Shown: positions 48,879 to 64,000, counted from the first letter of the stretch. The stretch is 64,000 nucleotides of DNA from Auanema rhodensis (GCA_964057225.1 OZ059894.1:5580001-5644000); one strand, 5' to 3'. Numbers and translations: made by a program. The notes: generated from the sequence alone by a model not told the origin.

Positions 48879-49615
48879 ATGAAGACTATCAGGTAAATAC
48901 CTAGTTAACATCACAACAGGTTCAACTCTCATTTTTTAGTATCCTTATTGCTTTTGTTGGTGTTTGTTCTGCTCAATATGCTGCTTGGCCAGTTAGCTCG
49001 TATAGCCCATACTATGCAAGATACTACAGTGCTGCACTTTCTCCATCTTTAGCAGCTCCTCAAGTTGTGGCTGCTGCTCCAGCTCTTTCTCAGCCTATTG
49101 CTGCATCCCCTGCATTTGCTGCTGCTGCTGCTAATGGACTTCCAGTTGTCGCCTCTCCACCACTTGCCTACCCATCTCCAGTTGCCGCTTCTCCAGTTGC
49201 TCCAGGCCCATTGGCTTACCCAGCTCCAGTTGCTGCTGCTCCAGCTCCACTTGCCTACCCAGCTCCAGTTGCTGCTGCTCCAGCTCCACTTGCGTACCCA
49301 GCACCAGTCGCTGCTGCTCCTGCTCCAATGGCCTACCCTGCGCCAGTTGCTGCTGCTCCAGCTCCACTAGCCTACCCAGCTCCAGTTGCTGCTGCTCCAG
49401 CTCCATTAGCCTATCCAGCTCCAGTTGCTGCTGCTCCAGCTCCATTAGCATACCCAGCTCCAGTAGCTGCCCCTATTGCACAGACACCTGTAGCTGCTGC
49501 TCCAGTTGCTGCAGCTCCTTTCGCAGCAGCTCCAGCCGTTGTTCCAGCGTATGCTCCATTCCAGACTGCTGCTTACTTCATCGGAGCAAACAAAGATAAA
49601 ACTGTCAAAGCTTAA
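48879..49615 (+). CDS. Secreted Ala/Pro-rich low-complexity protein with 13-aa (39-bp) repeats
   Basis: TATA-like ATATAAA near 48819; MKTIS/ILIAFVGVCSA signal peptide across one intron; about 8 copies of PLAYPAPVAAAPA with synonymous variation; ends YFIGANKDKTVKA*. Confidence 0.88.
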
Positions 49616-51073: not shown

Positions 51074-52223
51074 ATGGAAAAAAAATTAAAATTAGTTGTA
51101 GTAGGAGACAGCTATGTCGGTAAAACCAGGTACGATTTTCCTTTTCTTATTCGTTTTTTCAATGATATGCTGATCTTTTGGTCTGTTTTTTTCTGAACAA
51201 ATCATCTATGCAGTGATCAAACATTTTTTCTACAATGATTTTATTTTTGATTGCAGTTTACTATTCGCTTATACACAGAAACAATTTCTTGACAATTATG
51301 CAACAACAGTATTTGATAATTGGGCTGTAACTATTAGTATTGAAAATATTCTGTATACTGTTAACTTATTTGATACAGCTGGTCAGGTATATTTTATGCA
51401 AAACTTTAATTTCAAAAATCATCTAAAGAATAAAAGAAAAAATAAATTATGATTTAGTGTTCTTGAATGTAGTTGTTTTAAATCTTCTTTATTTTACATC
51501 TTTTGTGAAAGTCACATAGTCGAACCGTAAAAACTTTCTTGTAGAATATTGTGCAAATAATATTCGCAAATATCTTTTTTCTGTTCATTTTAGTTAGAAG
51601 ATCAAAAGATGTTTGAAGTTGTTGAAGGACACAATTATACAAATTTACAACATAGCATGAATCTCGGATTTATAATTTCAATAAAACATTATTTTAAACG
51701 TTCTCTAAAACAATTAGAATCAAAAAAGTTCTTTGTACAGTACATACATTAGATTATAAAATAACTTTTCAGGAAGATTATGATAATTTACGTTATCTCA
51801 GTTATCCAAATACTGATGCTTTTTTACTATGTTTCTCATTGGCAGATCCAACAAGTTTGGAAGCTTGCCGAACAGTATGGATGCCGGAAATAAGGAAGTA
51901 TGCTGGCGAGTCTGTTCCGGTTATACTGGTTGGAACAAAAGAAGATCTCTTGGATAAAACAAATGAAAAGCAAGCAGTTTCAGATGAGCAAGCAACAAAA
52001 GTAGCTTCACAGGTTAGTTAATATAATATTGATAAGATTTCTACTATTCAATAATTATCTTATTTCTTATTAGTTCAATGTTCAGATAGGTTGTACAAAA
52101 TTTTTGGCATGCTCATCGTTAACACATAGAGGTTTAAAACGAGTTTTCGATGAAGCGTTCTTGGTCGCTATAGGATTATCAGTAGCAGATGATACCAAAA
52201 AACCATGTTGTACTATTCAATAA
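51074..52223 (+). CDS. crp-1: Cdc42-related Rho-family GTPase CRP-1
   Basis: [53 protein letters not shown] and C-terminal CCTIQ*; 4 exons. Confidence 0.88.
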
Positions 52224-53071
52224 AATCAGTTTATTTCTTTAAAAAAATGTTTTTTTTTTAATATAGAACTTTATATATAAATGACGAATGTAGGTGAAAT
52301 AGAATGTTAAGCTTTAAATAGTGGATCAACTTAGCAGCATTATTTATTCTGAACTACAAAATGTTATTTTTTAAGCTCAACTAGAGAGGGTTCATAGTTA
52401 AAGATGTAGTGTTGTAACAATCGATTCAATTTGACTGAACATCTTATATGAATGATTCGTTATGATTATCAATTCTTATCTCTGACTTTTCAGGCGCATA
52501 ACTTTTCTAAATGATTGTTCAGATAGTTCAAAAACAATAAAGTTCAAAATAATAATAGTTTTAAAACAATATGGTGAGTTTAGAGGTGTTCAGTGTGTTT
52601 ATTTGTGTTTCATTTTTCGTAAAAAAAAGCCAAACATTACTGTATCCGGGTTTCATAATATTTCTAATGAACCAGTGTGATAATTTCAAGAATTAAAGCT
52701 ATAATCCTGGCATCATTTGTAATATTTTAATCAGATATTATTTCATGAATAGTAATGGGAAATTTTTGATAGAAAAAGAAGGGATACGAAAATATAAAAA
52801 AACAATTCAAGTTTGATACCATACTTTAGTAATTTAAAAAAGCTTAATTTTCATGATTTTCATGCGTTATATGTCTTATTATATAAACAGAAAGCCAACT
52901 ACGATGAATTATGCAGGTTTTTTTTTTGTAATATTTGGCGCTTCTATCATTGTTTTTTTTACTGTTGATTGCTCGGCAATGAATTATGACACTGTTCTTG
53001 AAATCAAAATTTATTTGACTAACACATTTTTATAATATATGTAAATTATGAATACATAAATCTGGATTCGA

Positions 53072-53290
53072 TCTAGGTGGTAATGCCATAAATATCGATA
53101 TGAACGCTGATAATGAGAATATTAATGCGAAAAAACAGCGAAAGAACATTTGATATTATGTTTTCACTTGGTTTTTTTCATAATTTATGCAATTGATACA
53201 AATGTTTTTCTATTCCTTTTTAGACATATACCTGTACTAATGGGTTTGAAGTTTAAAATATTTTGAAAGTTAGAAAAATCATTTATACCA
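53072..53290 (+). repeat. Degenerate direct repeat, left copy (partner 61874-62060)
   Basis: Shares ATGTTTTCACTxGG..TTTTTTCATA and GTTTGAAGTTT..AATA.TTT.AAAGTTA.AAAAATCATTTATACC with the right flank, in the same orientation. Confidence 0.65.
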
Positions 53291-53329
53291 TTTATTTAAA
53301 ATTTTGATTTTCTTTTCATTTCCTCCATT

Positions 53330-54442
53330 CGACTCTTCGTTTCTTCCTCGGCTCTTACGCGGCTTCTCCCACGTTTTTTCGGTTCTTCCTTCGATTTTCG
53401 GTTCTTTCTTGGTTCTTTCTTGGATCTTTCTTGACTATTCTTCTAGGTGAAGAACCAAAAAGTCGATGAAGAACAGAGGAGGCGAGCAAAAACCGAATAG
53501 TCGAAAAATCGAAAGGCTGAAGGAAAAAGGACGAATCGAGAAAGAGATCAGGAAGAGCCCAGGACGAACCAACGAATCGAGGAAGAATTCGGGAAGAACC
53601 GAGGACAAACCGAACTACTGAAGAGGAGCCGAGGAAAAACCAAAAATTCGAGGTCCGTCGTACGTAGTTCAGAAGATCCTAGGAAGAATCGAAGATTCAA
53701 AGAAAAACCGAAGTGGTGAGGAAGAACCGACGAATAGAAGAAGAGTTCAGGAAGAGCCACGGGAGAACCGAACTGCTGAAGACGAGCCGAGGAAGAACCG
53801 AGGATTCGAAAACGGGCAGAAGAAACAACGATCAGCCGCTTAAAAACAGAAAAGTGCCGAAAAAACCAAAAAGTCGAGGTATGTCGTACGTTGTTCAGAA
53901 GAGCCTAGGAAGAGTTGAAGATTTGAAGAAAAACTGAAGTGCTGAAGAAGAACCTACGAATAGAAGGAGCTACGGGAGAACCGAACTGCTGAAGACGAGC
54001 CGAGAAAGAACCGAAAAGTCGCGGAAGAGCCAACAAATCGAGGTCCGTGGTCCAGAATATCAACGGTTTAGAAGAGAAGAATCCAAGGGTGAAAGAAAAA
54101 CCGATGAGTCAAGGAAGAGAACAGAAGAGTCCCGGAAAAACCAAAAAGTCGAGGTCCGTCGTACGTAGTTCAGAAGATCCTAGGAAGAATCGAAGATTTG
54201 AAGAAAAACCGAAGTGCTGAAGAAGAACCGACGAATAGAAGGAGAGTTCAGGAGGATCCACGGGAGAACCGAACTGCTGAAGACGTGCCGAGGAAGAACC
54301 GAAAAGTCGCGGAAGAGCCAACAACTCGAGGTCCGTCGTACGTTGTTCAGGAGGAACATGGTTCGACGAGCCTAGGAAGAATCAAAGATTCAAAAAAAAC
54401 CGAAATGCTGAAGACGAGCAGACAGACAAAACGATCAGCCAA
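53330..54442 (+). repeat. Complex GAAGA-rich minisatellite, left arm (first ~115 bp in opposite orientation)
   Basis: Recurrent GAAGAACCGA, GAAGAGCC, CGAGGTCCGT and CCGAACTGCTGAAGACGAGCCGAG modules. Confidence 0.85.
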
Positions 54443-56036
54443 TTAAAATAGAAGAGAGAGTAGTTCCTTGGTCCAGCAGACTGATGATCCTGGACATTCG
54501 TCGTTGTAAGGAGCCAAAGAAGCAGACAGCGGTACACAATGCCAAACTCTGTAAATTTCAAGAATACAAATACATTTCAATTTCAAATTATTACCAGAAA
54601 TCAGGAGTATGAGAAGAGAGTAGTTCCTCGGTCCAGCAGACTGATGATCCGGGTCATTCGTCGTTGGATGAAGCCAAAGAAACAGACAGCGGCACACAAT
54701 GCCAAACTCTGTAAATTTCAAGAATACAAATACATTTCAATTTCAAATTATTACCAGAAATCAGGAGTATGAGAAGAGAGTAGTTCCTTGGTCCAGCAGA
54801 CTGATGATCCGGGTCATTCGTCGTTGAAAGGAGCCAAAGAAGCAGACAGCGGTACACAATGCCAAACTCTGTAAATTTCAAGAATACAAATACATTTCAA
54901 TTTCAAATTATTACCAGAAATCAGGAGTATGAGAAGAGAGTAGTTCCTCGGTTCAGCAGACTGATGATCCGGGTCATTCGTCGTTGAAAGGAGCCAAAGA
55001 AGCAGACAGCGGTACACAATGCCAAACTCTGTAAATTTCAAGAATACAAATACATTTCAATTTCAAATTATTACCAGAAATCAGGAGTATGAGAAGAGAG
55101 TAGTTCCTCGGTCCAGCAGACTGATGATCCGGGTCATTCGTCGTTGAAAGGAGCCAAAGAAGCAGACAGCGGTACACAATGCCAAACTCTGTAAATTTCA
55201 AGAATACAAATACATTTCAATTTCAAATTATTACCAGAAATCAGTAGTATGAGAAGAGAGTAGTTCCTCGGTCCAGCAGACTGATGATCCGGGTCATTCG
55301 TCGTTGAAAGGAGCCAAAGAAGCAGACAGCGGTACACAATGCCAAACTCTGTAAATTTCAAGAATACAAATACATTTCAATTTCAAATTATTACCAGAAA
55401 TCAGTAGTATGAGAAGAGAGTAGTTCCTCGGTCCAGCAGACTGATGATCCGGGTCATTCGTCGTTGGATGAAGCCAAAGAAACAGACAGCGGCACACAAT
55501 GCCAAACTCTGTAAATTTCAAAACTACAAATACATTTAAATATCAAATTATTACCAGAAATCAGGAGTATGAGAAGAGAGTAGTTCCTCGGTTCAGCAGA
55601 CTGATGATCCGGGTCATTCGTCGTTGAAAGGAGCCAAAGAAGCAGACAGCGGTACACAATGCCAAACTCTGTAAATTTCAAGAATACAAATACATTTCAA
55701 TTTCAAATTATTACCAGAAATCAGTAGTATGAGAAGAGAGTAGTTCCTCGGTCCAGCAGACTGATGATCCGGGTCATTCGTCGTTGAAAGGAGCCAAAGA
55801 AGCAGACAGCGGCACACAATGCCAAACTCTGTAAATTTCAAGAATACAAATACATTTCAATTTCAAATTATTACCAGAAATCAGGAGTATGAGAAGAGAG
55901 TAGTTCCTCGGTCCAGCAGACTGATGATCCGGGTCATTCGTCGTTGGATGAAGCCAAAGAAACAGACAGCGGCACTCAATGCCAAACTCTGTAAATTTCA
56001 AGAATACAAATACATTATAATTTCAAATTATTACCA
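54443..56036 (-). repeat. Tandem array of ten 160-bp units (left arm)
   Basis: CTGATGATCC recurs at 54481, 54641 ... 55921 with exact 160-bp period. Confidence 0.95.
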
Positions 56037-56521
56037 AGTAATTAGCATATTCACAAGACGAACATTGTGTGCTTGATTGTTTATTGAATATATAAGATTA
56101 TCTGGATATCAGATTTTTTTTAAATATTACATAGATCATCTCCGTTTTCGAATTATCGGAGTTTCAAAATATGAAATTAAAATTTATAAACTCACGTACT
56201 CTTCATTATATCTGTAATACTAAAATGAATAATTGAAGCAAGAATTGAAACTTAGGTATGCGGCTTGTTGAAGCCATATTAATGCTACATGCGATCCAAT
56301 CTTCCTTCTGGAGAAATTTTACATGAAAGTTATGGTTTCTGTTCATCTTGTCGAGTTTGCTTTCTGAGAATAAGCTTATACAGATATGGTTCAAGTTAAG
56401 TAATAAATTACCTTGGTCATTCTTTTGTTTTACCGCAAGTACTTTAGAGCTAGCGAAGAGACTTTGCAGTCTGAAGAGCCTAGGAGGTGTCGACCTATGC
56501 GGACAGCGACAGTTAGACAAA

Positions 56522-56592
56522 TGAGTGTCAACTGAAAAAAATTTGCTTATATACCCCTTGACGGGCAGACCACGTAAACCACGCTTACGTCA
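56522..56592 (-). promoter_or_regulatory. Outward-facing core promoter of left arm (TGACGTAA, TATA, Inr)
   Basis: Mirror copy of 57944-58017; CTTATATAC at 56546-56554. Confidence 0.6.
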
Positions 56593-57943
56593 AATTTCAA
56601 AAATTCTAAAAACAAAAACCGGCTGTACATGATTTGAAAATTATGGGAAATGGATTAAAATTTGTGTTTAACTAATGTTTTTATTTTAATTTTAAGGAAT
56701 TATATTACATTTTTAATATTATTATATTATTTATACTGTTTTATACTTTAAAATTATCAAATATTTTTATATAACAATAATTTTTAATTAAATATTTGAT
56801 TTTTTTTATTCATTTCAAGTTGGTTATTACTAATAAACATTTAAATTATTTGAAACATATAAATATTATGAGAATTAATTATAAGTTAATGTTTATGGAA
56901 CATAGACCAAGGCAAATTTATTCTAATTTGACTTGAGTTCGACATTATTCAAATTAGCACAAGAAAATCGAATATTTTAAAAATAAATGCAAAAACATTA
57001 TATAATATTATTATTTAATTATTTCGAGAAATAACAGAAAAAGAACAAGCTTCAGATGTACATGTAAACTCAACATACACGTTGTTGTTCACCAAAAATA
57101 TAAATCGCGGCGTTCTTTTTTATTAATTTCTAATAAAATAATTTATTTAAATTCATTTAAAAGCTAGATCTCAGTGAAATCTCAGTTAAGAAATTCACTC
57201 AAAGATCCGATTTATCGTCTTCGTCTCCTCAAGACGAAACGATTGGTATATTTTTAAATACTCCAACCGACGCTGTTTATTGGAGGGAGTTGTAAAATAG
57301 TTTTCTATTTTTTAAACCAATTAGAATTTCAGATACATCTACATTTTTCTACCCTGTATTGAAAAAATATAACTTTTAAATGAATTTAAATAAATTTTTT
57401 TATTAGAAATTAATAAAAAAGAACGCCGCGATTTATATTTTTGGTGAACAACAACGTGTATGTTGAGTTTACATGTACATCTGAAGCTTGTTCTTTTTCT
57501 GTTATTTCTCGAAATAATTAAATAATAATATTATATAATGTTTTTGCATTTATTTTTAAAATATTCGATTTTCTTGTGCTAATTTGAATAATGTCGAACT
57601 CAAGTCAAATTAGAATAAATTTGCCTTGGTCTATGTTCCATAAACATTAACTTATAATTAATTCTCATAATATTTATATGTTTCAAATAATTTAAATGTT
57701 TATTAGTAATAACCAACTTGAAATGAATAAAAAAAATCAAATATTTAATTAAAAATTATTGTTATATAAAAATATTTGATAATTTTAAAGTATAAAACAG
57801 TATAAATAATATAATAATATTAAAAATGTAATATAATTCCTTAAAATTAAAATAAAAACATTAGTTAAACACAAATTTTAATCCATTTCCCATAATTTTC
57901 AAATCATGTACAGCCGGTTTTTGTTTTTAGAATTTTTGAAATT

Positions 57944-58017
57944 TGACGTAAGCGTGGTTTACGTGGTCTGCCCGTCAAGGGGTATATAAGCAAATTTTTT
58001 TCAGTTGACACTCATTT
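57944..58017 (+). promoter_or_regulatory. Outward-facing core promoter of right arm (TGACGTAA, TATA, Inr)
   Basis: GTATATAAG (57982-57990) fits the nematode TATA consensus GTATAWWAG; Inr-like CTCATTT has its A 31 nt after the TATA; bZIP-type TGACGTAA at 57944. Confidence 0.6.
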
Positions 58018-58501
58018 GTCTAACTGTCGCTGTCCGCATAGGTCGACACCTCCTAGGCTCTTCAGACTGCAAAGTCTCTTCGCTAGCTCTAAAGTACTTG
58101 CGGTAAAACAAAAGAATGACCAAGGTAATTTATTACTTAACTTGAACCATATCTGTATAAGCTTATTCTCAGAAAGCAAACTCGACAAGATGAACAGAAA
58201 CCATAACTTTCATGTAAAATTTCTCCAGAAGGAAGATTGGATCGCATGTAGCATTAATATGGCTTCAACAAGCCGCATACCTAAGTTTCAATTCTTGCTT
58301 CAATTATTCATTTTAGTATTACAAATATAATGAAGAGTACGTGAGTTTATAAATTTTAATTTCATATTTTGAAACTCCGATAATTCGAAAACGGAGATGA
58401 TCTATGTAATATTTAAAAAAAATCTGATATCCAGATAATCTTATATATTCAATAAACAATCAAGCACACTATGTTCGTCTTGTGAATATGCTAATTACTT
58501 G

Positions 58502-59931
58502 GTAATAATTTGATATTTAAATGTATTTGTATTCTTGAAATTTACAGAGTTTGGCATTGTGTGCCGCTGTCTGTTTCTTTGGCTTCATCCAACGACGAAT
58601 GACCGGATCATCAGTCTGCTGGACCGAGGAACTACTCTCTTCTCATACTCCTGATTTCTGGTAATAATTTGAAATTGAAATGTATTTGTAGTTTTGAAAT
58701 TTACAGAGTTTGGCATTGTGTGCCGCTGTCTGTTTCTTTGGCTCCATTCAACGACGAATGACCCGGATCATCAGTCTGCTGGACCAAGGAACTACTCTCT
58801 TCTCATACTCCTGATTTCTGGTAATAATTTGAAATTATAATGTATTTGTATTCTTGAAATTTACAGAGTTTGGCATTGTGTGCCGCTGTCTGTTTCTTTG
58901 GCTTCATCCAACGACGAATGACCGGATCATCAGTCTGCTGGACCGAGGAACTACTCTCTTCTCATACTCCTGATTTCTGGTAATAATTTGAAATTGAAAT
59001 GTATTTGTAGTTTTGAAATTTACAGAGTTTGGCATTGTGTGCCGCTGTCTGTTTCTTTGGCTCCATTCAACGACGAATGACCCGGATCATCAGTCTGCTG
59101 GACCAAGGAACTACTCTCTTCTCATACTCCTGATTTCTGGTAATAATTTGAAATTGAAATGTATTTGTATTCTTGAAATTTACAGAGTTTGGCATTGTGT
59201 GCCGCTGTCTGTTTCTTTGGCTTCATCCAACGACGAATGACCCGGATCATCAGTCTGCTGGACCGAGGAACTACTCTCTTCTCATACTCCTGATTTCTGG
59301 TAATAATTTGAAATTGAAATGTATTTGTATTCTTGAAATTTACAGAGTTTGGCATTGTGTGCCGCTGTCTGTTTCTTTGGCTTCATCCAACGACGAATGA
59401 CCCGGATCATCAGTCTGCTGGACCGAGGAACTACTCTCTTCTCATACTCCTGATTTCTGGTAATAATTTGAAATTGAAATGTATTTGTATTCTTGAAATT
59501 TACAGAGTTTGGCATTGTGTGCCGCTGTCTGTTTCTTTGGCTTCATCCAACGACGAATGACCCGGATCATCAGTCTGCTGGACCGAGGAACTACTCTCTT
59601 CTCATACTCCTGATTTCTGGTAATAATTTGAAATTGGAATGTATTTGTATTCTTGAAATTTACAGAGTTTGGCATTGTGTACCGCTGTCTGCTTCTTTGG
59701 CTCCTTTCAACGACGAATGACCCGGATCATCAGTCTGCTGGACCGAGGAACTACTCTCTTCTCATACTCCTGATTTCTGGTAATAATTTGAAATTGAAAT
59801 GTATTTGTATTCTTGAAATTTACAGAGTTTGGCATTGTGTACCGCTGTCTGCTTCTTTGGCTCCTTACAACGACGAATGTCCAGGATCATCAGTCTGCTG
59901 GACCAAGGAACTACTCTCTCTTCTATTTTAA
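58502..59931 (+). repeat. Tandem array of nine 160-bp units (right arm)
   Basis: Reverse complement of the left array; two units (near 58601 and 58921) have a 1-bp deletion (GACCGG vs GACCCGG). Confidence 0.95.
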
Positions 59932-59934
59932 TTG

Positions 59935-61853
59935 GCTGATCGTTTTGTCTGTCTGCTCGTCTTCAGCATTTCGGTTTTTTTTGAATCTTTGATTCTTCCT
60001 AGGCTCGTCGAACCATGTTCCTCCTAAACAACGTACGACGGACCTCGAGTTGTTGGCTCTTCCGCGACTTTTCGGTTCTTCGTTCGGCTCGTCTTCAGCA
60101 GTTCGGTTCTCCCGTGGATCCTCCTGAACTCTCCTTCTATTCATCGGTTCTTCTTCAGCACTTCAGTTTTTCTTCAAATCTTCAACTCTTCCTAGGCTTT
60201 TCTCAAGTATTGACCTTCTGGATAACGGACGACGGACCTCGACTTTTTGGTTTTTCCGGGACTCTTCTGTTCTCTTCCTTGACTCATCGGTTTTTCTTTC
60301 ACCCTTGGATTCTTCTCTTCTAAACCGTTGATATTCTGGACCACGGACCTCGAGTTGTTGGCTCTTCCGCGACTTTTCGGTTCTTCCTCGGCTCGTCTTC
60401 AGCAGTTCGGTTCTCCCGTGGCTCCTTCTATTCGTCGGTTCTTCTTCAGCACTTCAGTTTTTCTTCAAATCTTCAACTCTTCCTAGGCTCTTCTGAACAA
60501 CGTACGACATACCTCGACTTTTTGGTTTTTTCGGCACTTTTCTGTTTTTAAGCGGCTGATCGTTGTTTCTTCTGCCCGTTTTCGAATCCTCGGTTCTTCC
60601 TCGGCTCGTATTCAGCAGTTCGGTTCTCCCGTGGCTCCTCCTGAACTCTCCTTCTATTCGTCGGTTCTTCTTCAGCACTTCAGTTTTTCTTCAAATCTTC
60701 AACTCTTCCTAGGCTTTTCTCAAGTATTGACCTTCTGGATAACGGACGACGGACCTCGACTTTTTGGTTTTTCCGGGACTCTTCTGTTCTCTTCCTTGAC
60801 TCATCGGTTTTTCTTTCACCCTTGGATTCTTTTCTTCTAAACCGTTGATATTCTGGACCACGGACCTCGAGTTGTTGGCTCTTCCGCGACTTTTCGGTTC
60901 TTCCTCGGCTCGTCTTCAGCAGTTCGGTTCTCCCGTGGATCCTCCTGAACTCTCCTTCTATTCGTCGGTTCTTCTTCAGCACTTCAGTTTTTCTTCAAAT
61001 CTTCAACTCTTCCTAGGCTTTTCTCAAGTATTGACCTTCTGGATAACGTACGACGGACCTCGAGTTGTTGGCTCTTCCGCGACTTTTCGGTTCTTCCTCG
61101 GCTCGTCTTCAGCAGTTCGGTTCTCCCGTGGATCCTCCTGAACTCTCCTTCTATTCGTCGGTTCTTCTTCAGCACTTCGGTTTTTCTTCAAATCTTCGAT
61201 TCTTCCTAGGATCTTCTGAACTACGTACGACGGACCTCGACTTTTTGGTTTTTCCGGGACTCTTCTGTTCTCTTCCTTGACTCATCGGTTTTTCTTTCAC
61301 CCTTGGATTCTTCTCTTCTAAACCGTTGATATTCTGGACCACGGACCTCGAGTTGTTGGCTCTTCCGCGACTTTTCGGTTCTTCCTCGGCTCGTCTTCAG
61401 CAGTTCGGTTCTCCCGTGGCTCCTTCTATTCGTCGGTTCTTCTTCAGCACTTCAGTTTTTCTTCAAATCTTCAACTCTTCCTAGGCTCTTCTGAACAACG
61501 TACGACATACCTCGACTTTTTGGTTTTTTCGGCACTTTTCTGTTTTTAAGCGGCTGATCGTTGTTTCTTCTGCTCGTTTTCGAATTTTAGGTTTTTTCTC
61601 GGCTCGTCTTCAGCAGTGCGGTCAAATCTTCAACTCTTCCTAGGCTTTTTTCAAGTATTGACCTTCTGGATAACGGACGACGGATCTCGACTTTTTGGTT
61701 TTTCCGGGACTCTTCTGTTCTCTTCCTTGACTCATCGGTTTTTCTTTCACCCTTGGATTCTTTTCTTCTAAACCGTTGATATTCTGGACCACGGACCTCG
61801 AGTTTTCGGCTCTTCCGCGACTTTTCGATTCTTCATCGGCTCTTCGGCTTCTT
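59935..61853 (-). repeat. Complex GAAGA-rich minisatellite, right arm (expanded, ~1.9 kb)
   Basis: Same modules as the left minisatellite in reverse orientation (TCGGTTCTTC, ACGGACCTCG), in shuffled higher-order blocks. Confidence 0.88.
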
Positions 61854-61873
61854 ACTGGTCGCCATCCTCAAAT

Positions 61874-62060
61874 TCTAGTTGATAAGCCTAAGCCTCGAAC
61901 TGTACTAGATATCTTTTGATATCTCAGATTTACTCTCATTAACACGCAATACAAGGGGATCGCATGTTTTCACTAGGGTTTTTTCATATAAACATTCCCG
62001 AACTAATATGTGTTTGAAGTTTTTAATACTTTAAAAGTTAAAAAAATCATTTATACCTAG
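61874..62060 (+). repeat. Degenerate direct repeat, right copy (partner 53072-53290)
   Basis: See left copy. Confidence 0.65.
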
Positions 62061-62522
62061 GGAAATTAAAAAATTTACAAAATCGCAAAAGAGTATGAAG
62101 GTAACATAAAATATACATGAAATATGAAATGATCTATTGACGAATCCAAACATTTTCAAAAGGTAAACCAAATAATTCTCAGATACTTATCATATTTGAA
62201 CTGTTGTAATATACAAAAAATGATATGAGATGAGAAAGATTGAACTAAGGTTTTAATATACAAAATATTATGCTCTTTAGTTTATTAAAAATGTACTGAA
62301 TGGAAATAGGGAAACAATTTTTCTAAAAATATGGATATTCGACAAAATGCGTAAGTTTTGTTATTTGAGATGTAATGATAATTATATACATAATATGAAA
62401 TACATCAACGATATGACTATTAGACATCTGAGGCATTAAGCAAAATTTATGTGGGTTCACCTTGTCCGCAATCAAATTCAAAAAAAGTTTATAAAAGCAT
62501 CTGAAACTGCAGAATATGATTC

Positions 62523-64000
62523 TTACAGAGCAGTTATGCTAAGATCTCTTTTTCCTAGCTGTGCCGCTGGTTTCATTATCGTGTGCAAACGAAACCCTGG
62601 TGTTCCTGCATCAAGTTCGGCTTGCCAACGTGTTCGAGAACGTGTCAGATCATTAGCGCTTACAGCGTCGTCACCCCATCCGCTATCACCATCGTCATCA
62701 GCTAGTGTCATAGCATTTCCTGGATCAAAACAACCCGGACTCCAATCCAGATTCGGTAATTGACGTTGAGATAATGGTTGCCATACGGGGGATATTCGTT
62801 CATTCTCTACAAAATTTTTGCCGTACAATAGCAGTGAAAAATGAAATCACTAGTCACCTGTCTCACCTAAATCTACAGTGGTTTTTTCATTTTCTGATAC
62901 TATAGCTGTGACGGCTTGGTAAGCTCCTTGATAATCACGACGTTTTACAAAACAGCAACAATATTCTTGGCGTATTAATCTCAGCAAATGAGCTCCATGA
63001 TGCCTGAAAGAACGATTGGTAGAAACACTGCTGGAGATTTAATTCAATAATGATCTTACTGAAAACATTCTCTATAATCCTTATTAAAAATCATATATAT
63101 GACGCAGTTAACAGATGAATTAAAAATAACTAAGAAGTTACTGGCGTCTGAGAGCAAATTAACCACTAATGGATCTGGGATAGAAAATGTTTCAATCATA
63201 TTAACAACCAGAGCCTTAAAATAAATTTTGATTGCTTTCAATATTGTAAGAGCACAAACGAACCAAAGTATTGCAAGCCAGAAAGAGAATCACAACCATG
63301 ATCATCGTAATAGTATCGTCTCCTGCACCATCATCTGCTTTTGCTGGTAATGATGCATCATGAGCTGAATTGCTAAAAAGAAAAAAAGTCACATATATGT
63401 GACTATCACCATGTAGAAACCATAGTATTTTTTGAAAAAAAATGAAATCGAACCTATCTTTGCTTTTTTTTCTTTCTAAACTCTGTCGACACAGAATTAT
63501 GGCATTCAAACATAAAAGAAATAAAAATGGTAACAAGGTCATCAGTACCATGTACATATATATATTATAAATAACATTAATCGTGAAGAATAAAGAAGTT
63601 GGGCAAATTTCTATTATATGCTCCTAAATTCAAAATAGCAGCTTTTTAATAATTTATTCTATATTACCTGACTAGCTTCATGGAAGCATTTCCGCAAATT
63701 GAACTGGGGAAACCGAAGGGAGTTATACATGATTGACACAATAATAACTGTGAAGCAAATTTTTTTTGCTTGTTGAACAGTACAATAACTTTTTGACAAT
63801 GATTTCCAACAAACCTAAATAAATGAAATGAAAACTTTTCTTTTGAAATAAGAAAATATTTTTTGTTTTCATTAACGTTATTAATTTACATTGATATAAC
63901 AGTCAAATGCTGCAGCAACTGTGAAATAGATACTACACGATTGAGCCATATATCCAAATGGAAGTGTGTATACAGTTGTGTATGGAGCTCTTGCCAGCTC
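62523..64000 (-). CDS. FMRFamide-peptide receptor (FRPR-family) class A GPCR, 3' portion (TM3 to C-terminus)
   Basis: TM5 YMVLMTLLPFLFLLCLNAII, TM6 DTITMIMVVILFLACNTL, TM7 LSDASNFLVIFNSSVNCVIYMIFNKDYR; the tail ends ...DLSITAL* (PDZ-type motif). The gene continues past the window end. Confidence 0.85.

Follow-up and report, generated by a model that had tools for sequence, protein, structure and literature searches.

A 160-bp tandem repeat in the genome of the nematode Auanema rhodensis is most likely a tandemly amplified intron-plus-exon cassette, judging from the conservation of its putative splice signals, and we lean towards the view that it is the cassette of a ∼15-copy family of outward-facing, spliced, non-coding transcription units. 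The repeat lies in a stretch of 64,000 nucleotides (nt) (GCA_964057225.1, OZ059894.1:5580001-5644000; here G000:C1:5580001-5644000), referred to below as the window, and paralogue searches covered the 181-Mb genome. A previous sequence-only reading of the window interpreted the unit as an exon-plus-intron module encoding a 38-amino-acid (aa) repeat of a ∼400-aa multi-helix membrane protein, and offered a spliced repeat long non-coding RNA (lncRNA) as its fallback. The module itself is supported, since the unit holds an intron-like block whose GT/AG ends and length are largely kept in paralogues, and of the two proposals we favour the lncRNA; the membrane protein fared poorly (see below).

The palindrome spans a total of 8.4 kb and bears two inverted arrays of the 160-bp unit (10 + 9 copies). 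The 160-bp period was located by Tandem Repeats Finder at 54455-56036 (9.9 copies) and 58500-59919 (8.9 copies), with 96% matches. The inner arms (55932-57169 and 57367-58604) are 99% complementary and the array-bearing parts 97%. From the centre outward, each arm is composed of ∼0.6 kb of AT-rich DNA with a promoter-like region, ∼0.5 kb of unique sequence, the 160-bp array and CT-rich repeats, the latter 0.9 kb long in the left arm and 1.9 kb in the right (Table 1). On the outward strand, the unit consists of a 46-nt AT-rich block (GTAATA...TTACAG) and 114 nt of flanking sequence. This split, including the coordinates of the example unit given by the sequence-only reading (exon 59186-59299, intron 59300-59345), proved exact: it is found at the GTAA anchor in 10/10 left units and in six of the eight complete right units. 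The exceptions are right units 1 (58502-58660) and 3 (58821-58979), which are 159 nt long (CCC → CC) and are the two units that had been flagged as frameshifted. Head-to-tail units, 96% matches, a higher-order duplicate and copy-number change (10, 9 and 5 units at the three copies of the locus) are all present in the array and are features of the satellite type. The higher-order duplicate measures 319 bp, comprises right units 1+2 and 3+4 (58502-59139, + strand) and carries the −1 deletion; because of it, unit order differs between the arms despite their 99% identical flanks. An assembly artefact (i.e. a fold-back chimera) was rejected given that the arms differ in unit number and order, that they are separated by a 197-nt loop, and that four other loci have the same head-to-head layout.

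The 46-nt block resembles the introns of this genome in length and ends. Gaps between consecutive myosin exon matches were mostly ∼20–45 nt, and the readable introns of the myosin genes were ∼44–50 nt in length, starting with GTAAG, GTAAT or GTATT and ending with TTTAG, TATAG or TTCAG; the earlier statement that the block has the ends and length of typical introns agrees with these examples. The block is exactly 46 nt in four lineages (the window, a paralogous locus on C4, and loci L030 and L027) as well as in L025, and 49 nt in L024 and L029. In L024, L029 and L025 the 5′ half of the intron is a different sequence, which still starts with GTATG and ends with CTTGAAATTTACAG at a length of 49 or 46 nt. 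When seven cassette sequences were aligned, the block was ungapped with 32/46 columns invariant; in the exons on either side, invariant columns numbered 15 over the last 46 nt upstream and nine over the first 50 columns downstream. The AG was invariant in these seven copies, position −3 was only C or T, and the GT was kept in all but one (6/7), a decayed reverse-strand copy. The flanking “exon” varies in length and sequence while, in these aligned copies, the length of the block and its AG stay fixed. If spliced, the junction between units would read ...CTGATTTCTG/AGTTTGGCATT.... An antisense reading of the unit, which offers a 47-nt GT..AG interval, was discarded as it leaves 113 nt and is not present in C4.

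Two 160-bp units used as a genome query identified three further sites. On the same contig, 78 kb upstream of the array, lies a truncated third copy of the locus, which has a single arm and 4.8 units. The other two sites are on C4, one being a second palindrome (C4:6.351-6.359 Mb) built of 139- and 144-bp units at ∼65–70% identity, the other a 3-unit array of 144 bp (C4:7.837 Mb). The AT-rich block of the C4 units (GTAAGA...TTCATAG) is again exactly 46 nt and matches the window block at 40/46 positions, ungapped. Its “exon” is 93 or 98 nt long, with 63/93 positions identical to the window “exon” and gap runs of 5 + 16 nt. Across the locus, identity between the window and C4 was 88% in the upstream AT-rich DNA, 86% in the promoter and leader, 81% in intron 1, 81% in the middle region and 87% in the cassette intron, versus 68% (plus 21 nt of gaps) in the cassette “exon”. 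The “exon” is the fastest-evolving part of the locus, the opposite of what is expected of a conserved membrane protein, and higher mutability of G/C sites may contribute to this divergence. Most likely, the cassette expanded independently in two lineages by unequal crossing-over, as 160 bp on C1 and as 139/144 bp on C4. The truncated third copy ends mid-unit at the boundary of an abutting 350-bp satellite (13.5 copies, 96% matches; L015 1-4718 = G000:C1:5557000-5561718).

The 176-bp promoter/leader core of the right arm (57935-58110) was recovered at 15 genome sites with 84–100% identity, and 10 of these 15 copies form five head-to-head pairs (the window, C4 and three C3 loci). The arms of a pair are 97–99% identical to each other, in comparison with only 73–86% between different loci. 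In the core, ...(T)ACGTAAACGTGGTTTACGTGG...GGGGTATATAAGCAAATTTTTTTCAGTTGACA..., a pair of ACGT-core motifs precedes a TATA box. The leader is conserved throughout the family and terminates with a GT donor (AAG/GTAATTT or GTATTTT). After every promoter and on the same strand lies a CT-rich array with 19- and 11-nt periods and up to 176 copies; a coding reading of these outer CT/GA-rich arrays was rejected because such periods cannot hold a reading frame. The C6 members L027 and L030 show a compact arrangement of leader, 72-nt intron, cassette exon, 46-nt intron, second cassette exon and CT array. No open reading frame (ORF) was conserved across family members, and the small upstream ORFs differ between them (e.g. 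MASTSRIPKFQFLLQLFILVLQI in the window corresponds to MASTSHIPKFQFLF in C4). Conservation of the promoter and splice signals among paralogues, combined with non-conservation of the ORF, suggests an lncRNA-type signature.

Several further repeats accompany the family. In the C3 members L024 (6214-7083) and L026 (5992-6632), a 209-bp segment that runs from the 3′ half of the leader through intron 1 and the next exon is tandemly repeated 3–4 times; this is a second, independent cassette amplification within the promoter family. The spacers of two C3 promoter pairs (L024 4407-5313 and L026 4529-5039) contain GA-rich arrays with 33-, 37- and 50-bp periods that the spacers of the window and C4 lack. 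At five family loci, the CT-rich arrays are bordered on their outer side by a 199/200-bp satellite (Table 1), as though it belonged to some larger arrangement that recurs; beside the palindrome of the window no copy of it was found.

Based on these features we propose a lineage-specific family of ∼15 outward transcription units, mostly arranged as head-to-head pairs (palindromes). Each member would consist of a strongly conserved promoter with two ACGT-core motifs and then a TATA box, a leader exon that is likewise conserved and bears a GT donor, from 0 to >20 copies of the 46-nt-intron-plus-exon cassette, and a long CT-rich simple-sequence array. Conservation suggests that transcription probably proceeds outward from the promoter by RNA polymerase II (Pol II) and that the 46-nt blocks are removed, and unequal crossing-over would have amplified the cassette separately on C1 and C4. 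Since no ORF is conserved across the family, the transcripts would most likely be non-coding, of the spliced lncRNA type. A more specific version, which we advance tentatively and with rather less confidence, holds that these are ∼15 regulated, mostly head-to-head, spliced non-coding RNA genes reading into CU-rich satellites, in which splice signals and intron length persist and the “exon” drifts. Should this be true, the RNAs could be multivalent sponges for pyrimidine-tract-binding proteins or could control the flanking satellites; both roles, protein binding by a CU-rich repeat RNA and an action on nearby satellites, are a guess on our part.

The coding potential that gave rise to the membrane-protein claim is real as an open frame. 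Phase 2 is the only one in which the 114-nt block is open (FGIV(C/Y)RCL(F/L)LWL...YSLLILLIS), as the sequence-only reading had stated; a single TGA interrupts each of the other two. It was also right that all ten left-arm units keep this frame, which is open across the junctions for 384 codons (an example peptide is TTNDPDHQSAGPR), and that the outermost unit runs on to a stop (Table 1). In the right arm the frame stops inside unit 1, and the 159-nt units run into TGA. No in-frame ATG occurs in any unit of the window or in the 384 open codons of the left arm. Upstream, in both the window and the third copy, a TAA lies in this frame two codons before the first junction (the residues leading up to the junction are *LL), the exon before the first unit ending in ...GC TAA TTA CTT G, and in C4 an in-frame stop lies five codons before the first junction. 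The original caveat that no in-frame ATG could be linked upstream was thus well placed. The two other visible upstream donors, ATGACCAAG/GT (58124/58125) and AAGAGTAC/GTGAGT, would enter phases that stop within the exon of the first unit.

Neither the open frame nor its hydrophobicity carries much weight. Dinucleotide shuffles of the 114 nt (n = 20,000) retained at least one cyclically open frame in 45% of cases on the same strand and in 79% on either strand, and after five of the 11 sense-strand GT..AG excisions of 35–79 nt that the unit allows, what is left is open and in frame. The open frame is no more than chance would give, which is not true of the arrays and the intron-like block. The Kyte-Doolittle mean over the best 19 residues of the junction stretch was 2.0–2.2 in window units and only 1.64 in C4, where the hydrophobic run extends for ∼10 residues and is followed by SNVYDG. 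The hydrophobic stretch that had been described across the junction therefore exists in the window, but a segment of transmembrane length is not conserved among relatives. T-rich codons give hydrophobic residues, and the 114-nt block is 61% T+C. Most likely, the 38-codon open frame and the hydrophobic stretch are by-products of T/C-rich sequence and not features of a gene product.

Comparison among units and loci gave a similar picture. The 93-nt C4 “exon” is open in the proposed phase and its peptide shares H.S.GPR.YSL...LI with the window, but the 5-nt insertion of the 98-nt form puts a TGA in that phase. The 98-nt form accounted for 8/19 left-arm C4 units examined, including the first three, for 4/22 of those examined in the right arm (12/41 in both arms), and for all three complete units at the third site, on C4. 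Two of the three phases are cyclically open in the 139-nt C4 units, and a 352-codon open run in C4 exists only through a phase change inside a 144-nt unit. For the window family, 24 units of the 160-bp type from three sites were compared. Among the 19 substitution variants in the proposed frame, 7 were synonymous and 12 non-synonymous, with a ratio of non-synonymous to synonymous polymorphism (pN/pS) of 0.56 (p = 0.17), relative to 0.98 and 0.71 in the two control phases; changes fell on codon positions 1/2/3 as 4/8/7, and 13% of columns were variable in the 46-nt block, compared with 16% in the 114-nt block. No purifying selection on the “exon” was detectable in these 24 units. The 159-nt (−1) form reaching TGA was present in 3/24, the deletion being common to right-arm units 1 and 3 and unit 4 of the third copy; because it is found in three units at two loci, it has spread by the same exchange processes as other variants. 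A single reading frame is not kept across all exons, given the 159-nt units and the C4 mixture of 93- and 98-nt exons with TGA. Overall, variation across copies is indifferent to the frame, but not to the GT/AG dinucleotides; of the refuting observation that the sequence-only reading had named for itself, the part on frame is thus borne out and the part on splice dinucleotides is not.

Protein searches, in which exons were used singly, returned no genuine relative. Pfam had no match for the exon peptide, a 104-aa inner-arm ORF or the outer repeat on both strands; an Rfam scan of 52000-63000 (E up to 1) had none, and a word search with a 75-aa read-through ORF yielded no candidates. HMMER with the 37-aa exon against 1.84 billion representative proteins gave one match (P0001, E = 2.6e-6, 33% identity), which is itself a translated repeat of unrelated sequence and hence spurious. 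An exact-product look-up of a 77-aa antisense ORF found nothing on record. These negatives are weak evidence, since the look-ups of library coverage, with this 77-aa ORF and a neighbouring 182-aa ORF, were also matchless.

Three alternatives to the spliced non-coding family were weighed. The least probable, and in our view very improbable, is a translated array producing a ∼380–400-aa repeat protein of 38-aa units with alternating hydrophobic helices and polar loops. The 10/10 open left-arm units with their 384 codons, the junction hydropathy of 2.0–2.2 over the best 19 residues, and the same open phase in the 93-nt C4 exons with GPR.YSL in common all speak for it, yet such a protein would have to be made from units lacking an in-frame ATG, behind an in-frame TAA two codons before the first junction, with both other visible donors leading into phases that stop in the first unit. 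Furthermore, the first right-arm unit is frameshifted by a deletion that has spread, the C4 left arm begins with three units of the 98-nt type, in which the frame stops, and the open frame is at chance level, with 2/3 frames open in the 139-nt C4 units. The hydrophobic window drops to 1.64 in C4 and is broken by SNVYDG, purifying selection is not detectable, and no relatives were found. A decaying pseudogene array, in which a once-coding exon was amplified and now drifts, making a short peptide or nothing, is less remote but still decidedly unlikely. The exon lengths of 114 and 93 nt, with the same phase open in both, could be remnants of a coding past, present evolution looks neutral, and the C6 members have an ATG at the start of the first cassette exon; the candidate peptide would be a 38-aa product of an exon-1 ATG joined to the unit in phase 0. 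However, the C6 ATG ORFs differ in length (L027 stops at the next junction and L030 reads on), their first 27 codons show four non-synonymous changes versus one synonymous change, and no homologue of any such peptide was found.

A plain satellite without relevant RNA is the alternative to which we attach the most weight, though we still regard it as rather unlikely. Under this explanation the units are nucleosome-sized, the conserved AT-rich 46-nt box acts at the DNA level as a protein-binding or positioning element, and the GT/AG ends and the promoter are relics of a dead family or are kept by gene conversion. Unit lengths of 139–160 bp, the 319-bp higher-order duplicate and arm-specific unit orders are what satellites typically show, other satellites surround the loci (the 350-bp array by the third copy and the 200-bp satellite at five loci), and 32/46 invariant columns across lineages go beyond what splice sites alone require. 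On the other hand, the block is only as conserved as the rest of the locus (81–88%), the “exon” being the divergent outlier, and L024, L025 and L029 change the 5′ half of the block yet keep GT, AG and a length of 46–49 nt. The C6 members, with only one or two cassettes directly after the GT donor of the leader, have a gene-like layout, and promoter and leader are conserved in 15/15 copies with constant orientation towards the arrays.

Some observations also weigh against a family of spliced non-coding units. Transcription and splicing are deduced from sequence conservation, and gene conversion, not function, can keep a promoter conserved. The left arm does keep 384 open codons, the 114- and 93-nt lengths differ by a multiple of three with the same phase open in both, and the window and C4 peptides in that frame share H.S.GPR.YSL...LI; pN/pS is <1, though not significantly. 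Finally, as protein libraries may lack this species, the absence of relatives is weak evidence.

The closest known architecture is that of the spider silk genes Nephila Flag and Argiope MaSp2, in which exon-intron modules are iterated. The introns of one such gene hardly differ from each other, and its repetitive exons diverge more quickly than they do (PMC3563967, citing Hayashi and Lewis 2000); the likeness lies in tandem exon-with-intron copies whose exon evolves faster than the intron. Flag is a proven translated silk protein with its exons in frame, whereas the 160-bp array has many units with frameshifts or stops, lacks a linked start codon and yielded no protein relatives. A full-text literature search for tandem exon-intron satellites in nematodes returned nothing relevant. 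The hsp-16 loci of Caenorhabditis elegans are head-to-head inverted gene pairs kept nearly identical by gene conversion, and offer an analogy for divergent, back-to-back TATA promoters in a near-perfect inverted repeat; unlike the units described here, which have no conserved ORF and end in simple-sequence arrays, hsp-16 encodes conserved small heat-shock proteins. Mammalian PNCTR is a pyrimidine-rich repeat lncRNA that binds polypyrimidine-tract proteins. The analogy here is functional only, in that a unit of Pol II type would yield an RNA with hundreds of short UCUUC/CUCGG-type repeats; the two are unrelated in sequence, and PNCTR is not known to contain amplified exon-intron cassettes.

This case serves as a caution, in that a 384-codon open frame with perfect introns tempts gene finders and human readers alike, and as evidence a spliced frame that stays open, or a run of hydrophobic residues, counts for almost nothing when the repeat is T/C-rich. 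It also illustrates that divergent paralogous arrays within one genome can decide a coding question without RNA data. The comparison also brought to light a small family, not described before, of paired promoters that lead into simple-sequence arrays. If these units are transcribed, they would offer a tractable case of a spliced non-coding RNA growing in the manner of a satellite.

Table 1. Features of the palindrome (window coordinates) and sites of the accompanying 199/200-bp satellite (locus coordinates).
Feature	Position	Strand	Basis or remark
Palindrome left arm, sense strand outward	53447-57169	-	Inverted-repeat pairs I1, I2, I11, I13; outer limit agrees with sequence
Palindrome centre, unique 197-nt loop	57170-57366	.	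Gap between arms of pair I1
Palindrome right arm, sense strand outward	57367-61853	+	Inverted-repeat analysis
Promoter-like core, right: TGACGTAAGCGTGGTTTACGTGG then GGGGTATATAAGC (TATA box)	57935-57992	+	15 genome sites, 84–100% identity; TATA box at 57983
Promoter-like core, left	56544-56601	-	Mirror of right core; TATA box at 56553
Putative leader exon 1, donor AAG/GTAATTT	58006-58124	+	Kept in all family copies; transcription start putative
Putative leader exon 1, left	56412-56530	-	Mirror of right leader
Putative intron 1, 48 nt, GTAATTT...TTCTCAG	58125-58172	+	81% identical to C4 paralogue, ungapped
Putative intron 1, left	56364-56411	-	Mirror of right intron 1
Middle region (intron 1 to array), no conserved ORF	58173-58501	+	TAA at 58492-58494 in the proposed frame
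Middle region, left	56035-56363	-	Mirror; TAA at 56042-56044
Right array, 9 units	58502-59919	+	Frame of last unit runs on to stop at 59992
Left array, 10 units, each 160 nt	54455-56034	-	Frame of last unit runs on to stop at 54382
Right outer CT-rich repeats, GGTTCTTCCTCGGCTC-type motifs, 19- and 193-bp periods	59993-61853	+	Homologous to CT-rich arrays after every family promoter
Left outer CT-rich repeats (GA-rich on + strand), about half the length of the right one	53447-54381	-	Repeat and inverted-repeat analysis
199/200-bp satellite	L016 6545-8501; L024 9130-10000; L026 434-1507; L028 1012-1673, 5277-7001; L029 1-994		

Two observations concern other parts of the genome. The 182-aa ORF mentioned above (window 49067-49615, + strand) is an A/P/V-rich repeat of PAPLAYPAPVAAA units within a local GC peak; it had no Pfam or word-search match, and its language-model neighbours were arthropod cuticle proteins, with a score of only 0.85. 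That the DNA might come from an arthropod was rejected in view of the abundance of SL1, a nematode spliced leader, in this genome. The SL1 leader with its donor (GGTTTAATTACCCAAGTTTGAG/GTA) had 3,430 genome matches with ≤1 mismatch, far more than the roughly 110 SL1 copies of C. elegans, and copies occur in tandem arrays with periods of ∼252 bp and ∼341 bp (C3:6741531-6766488 and C3:14134320-14140138).

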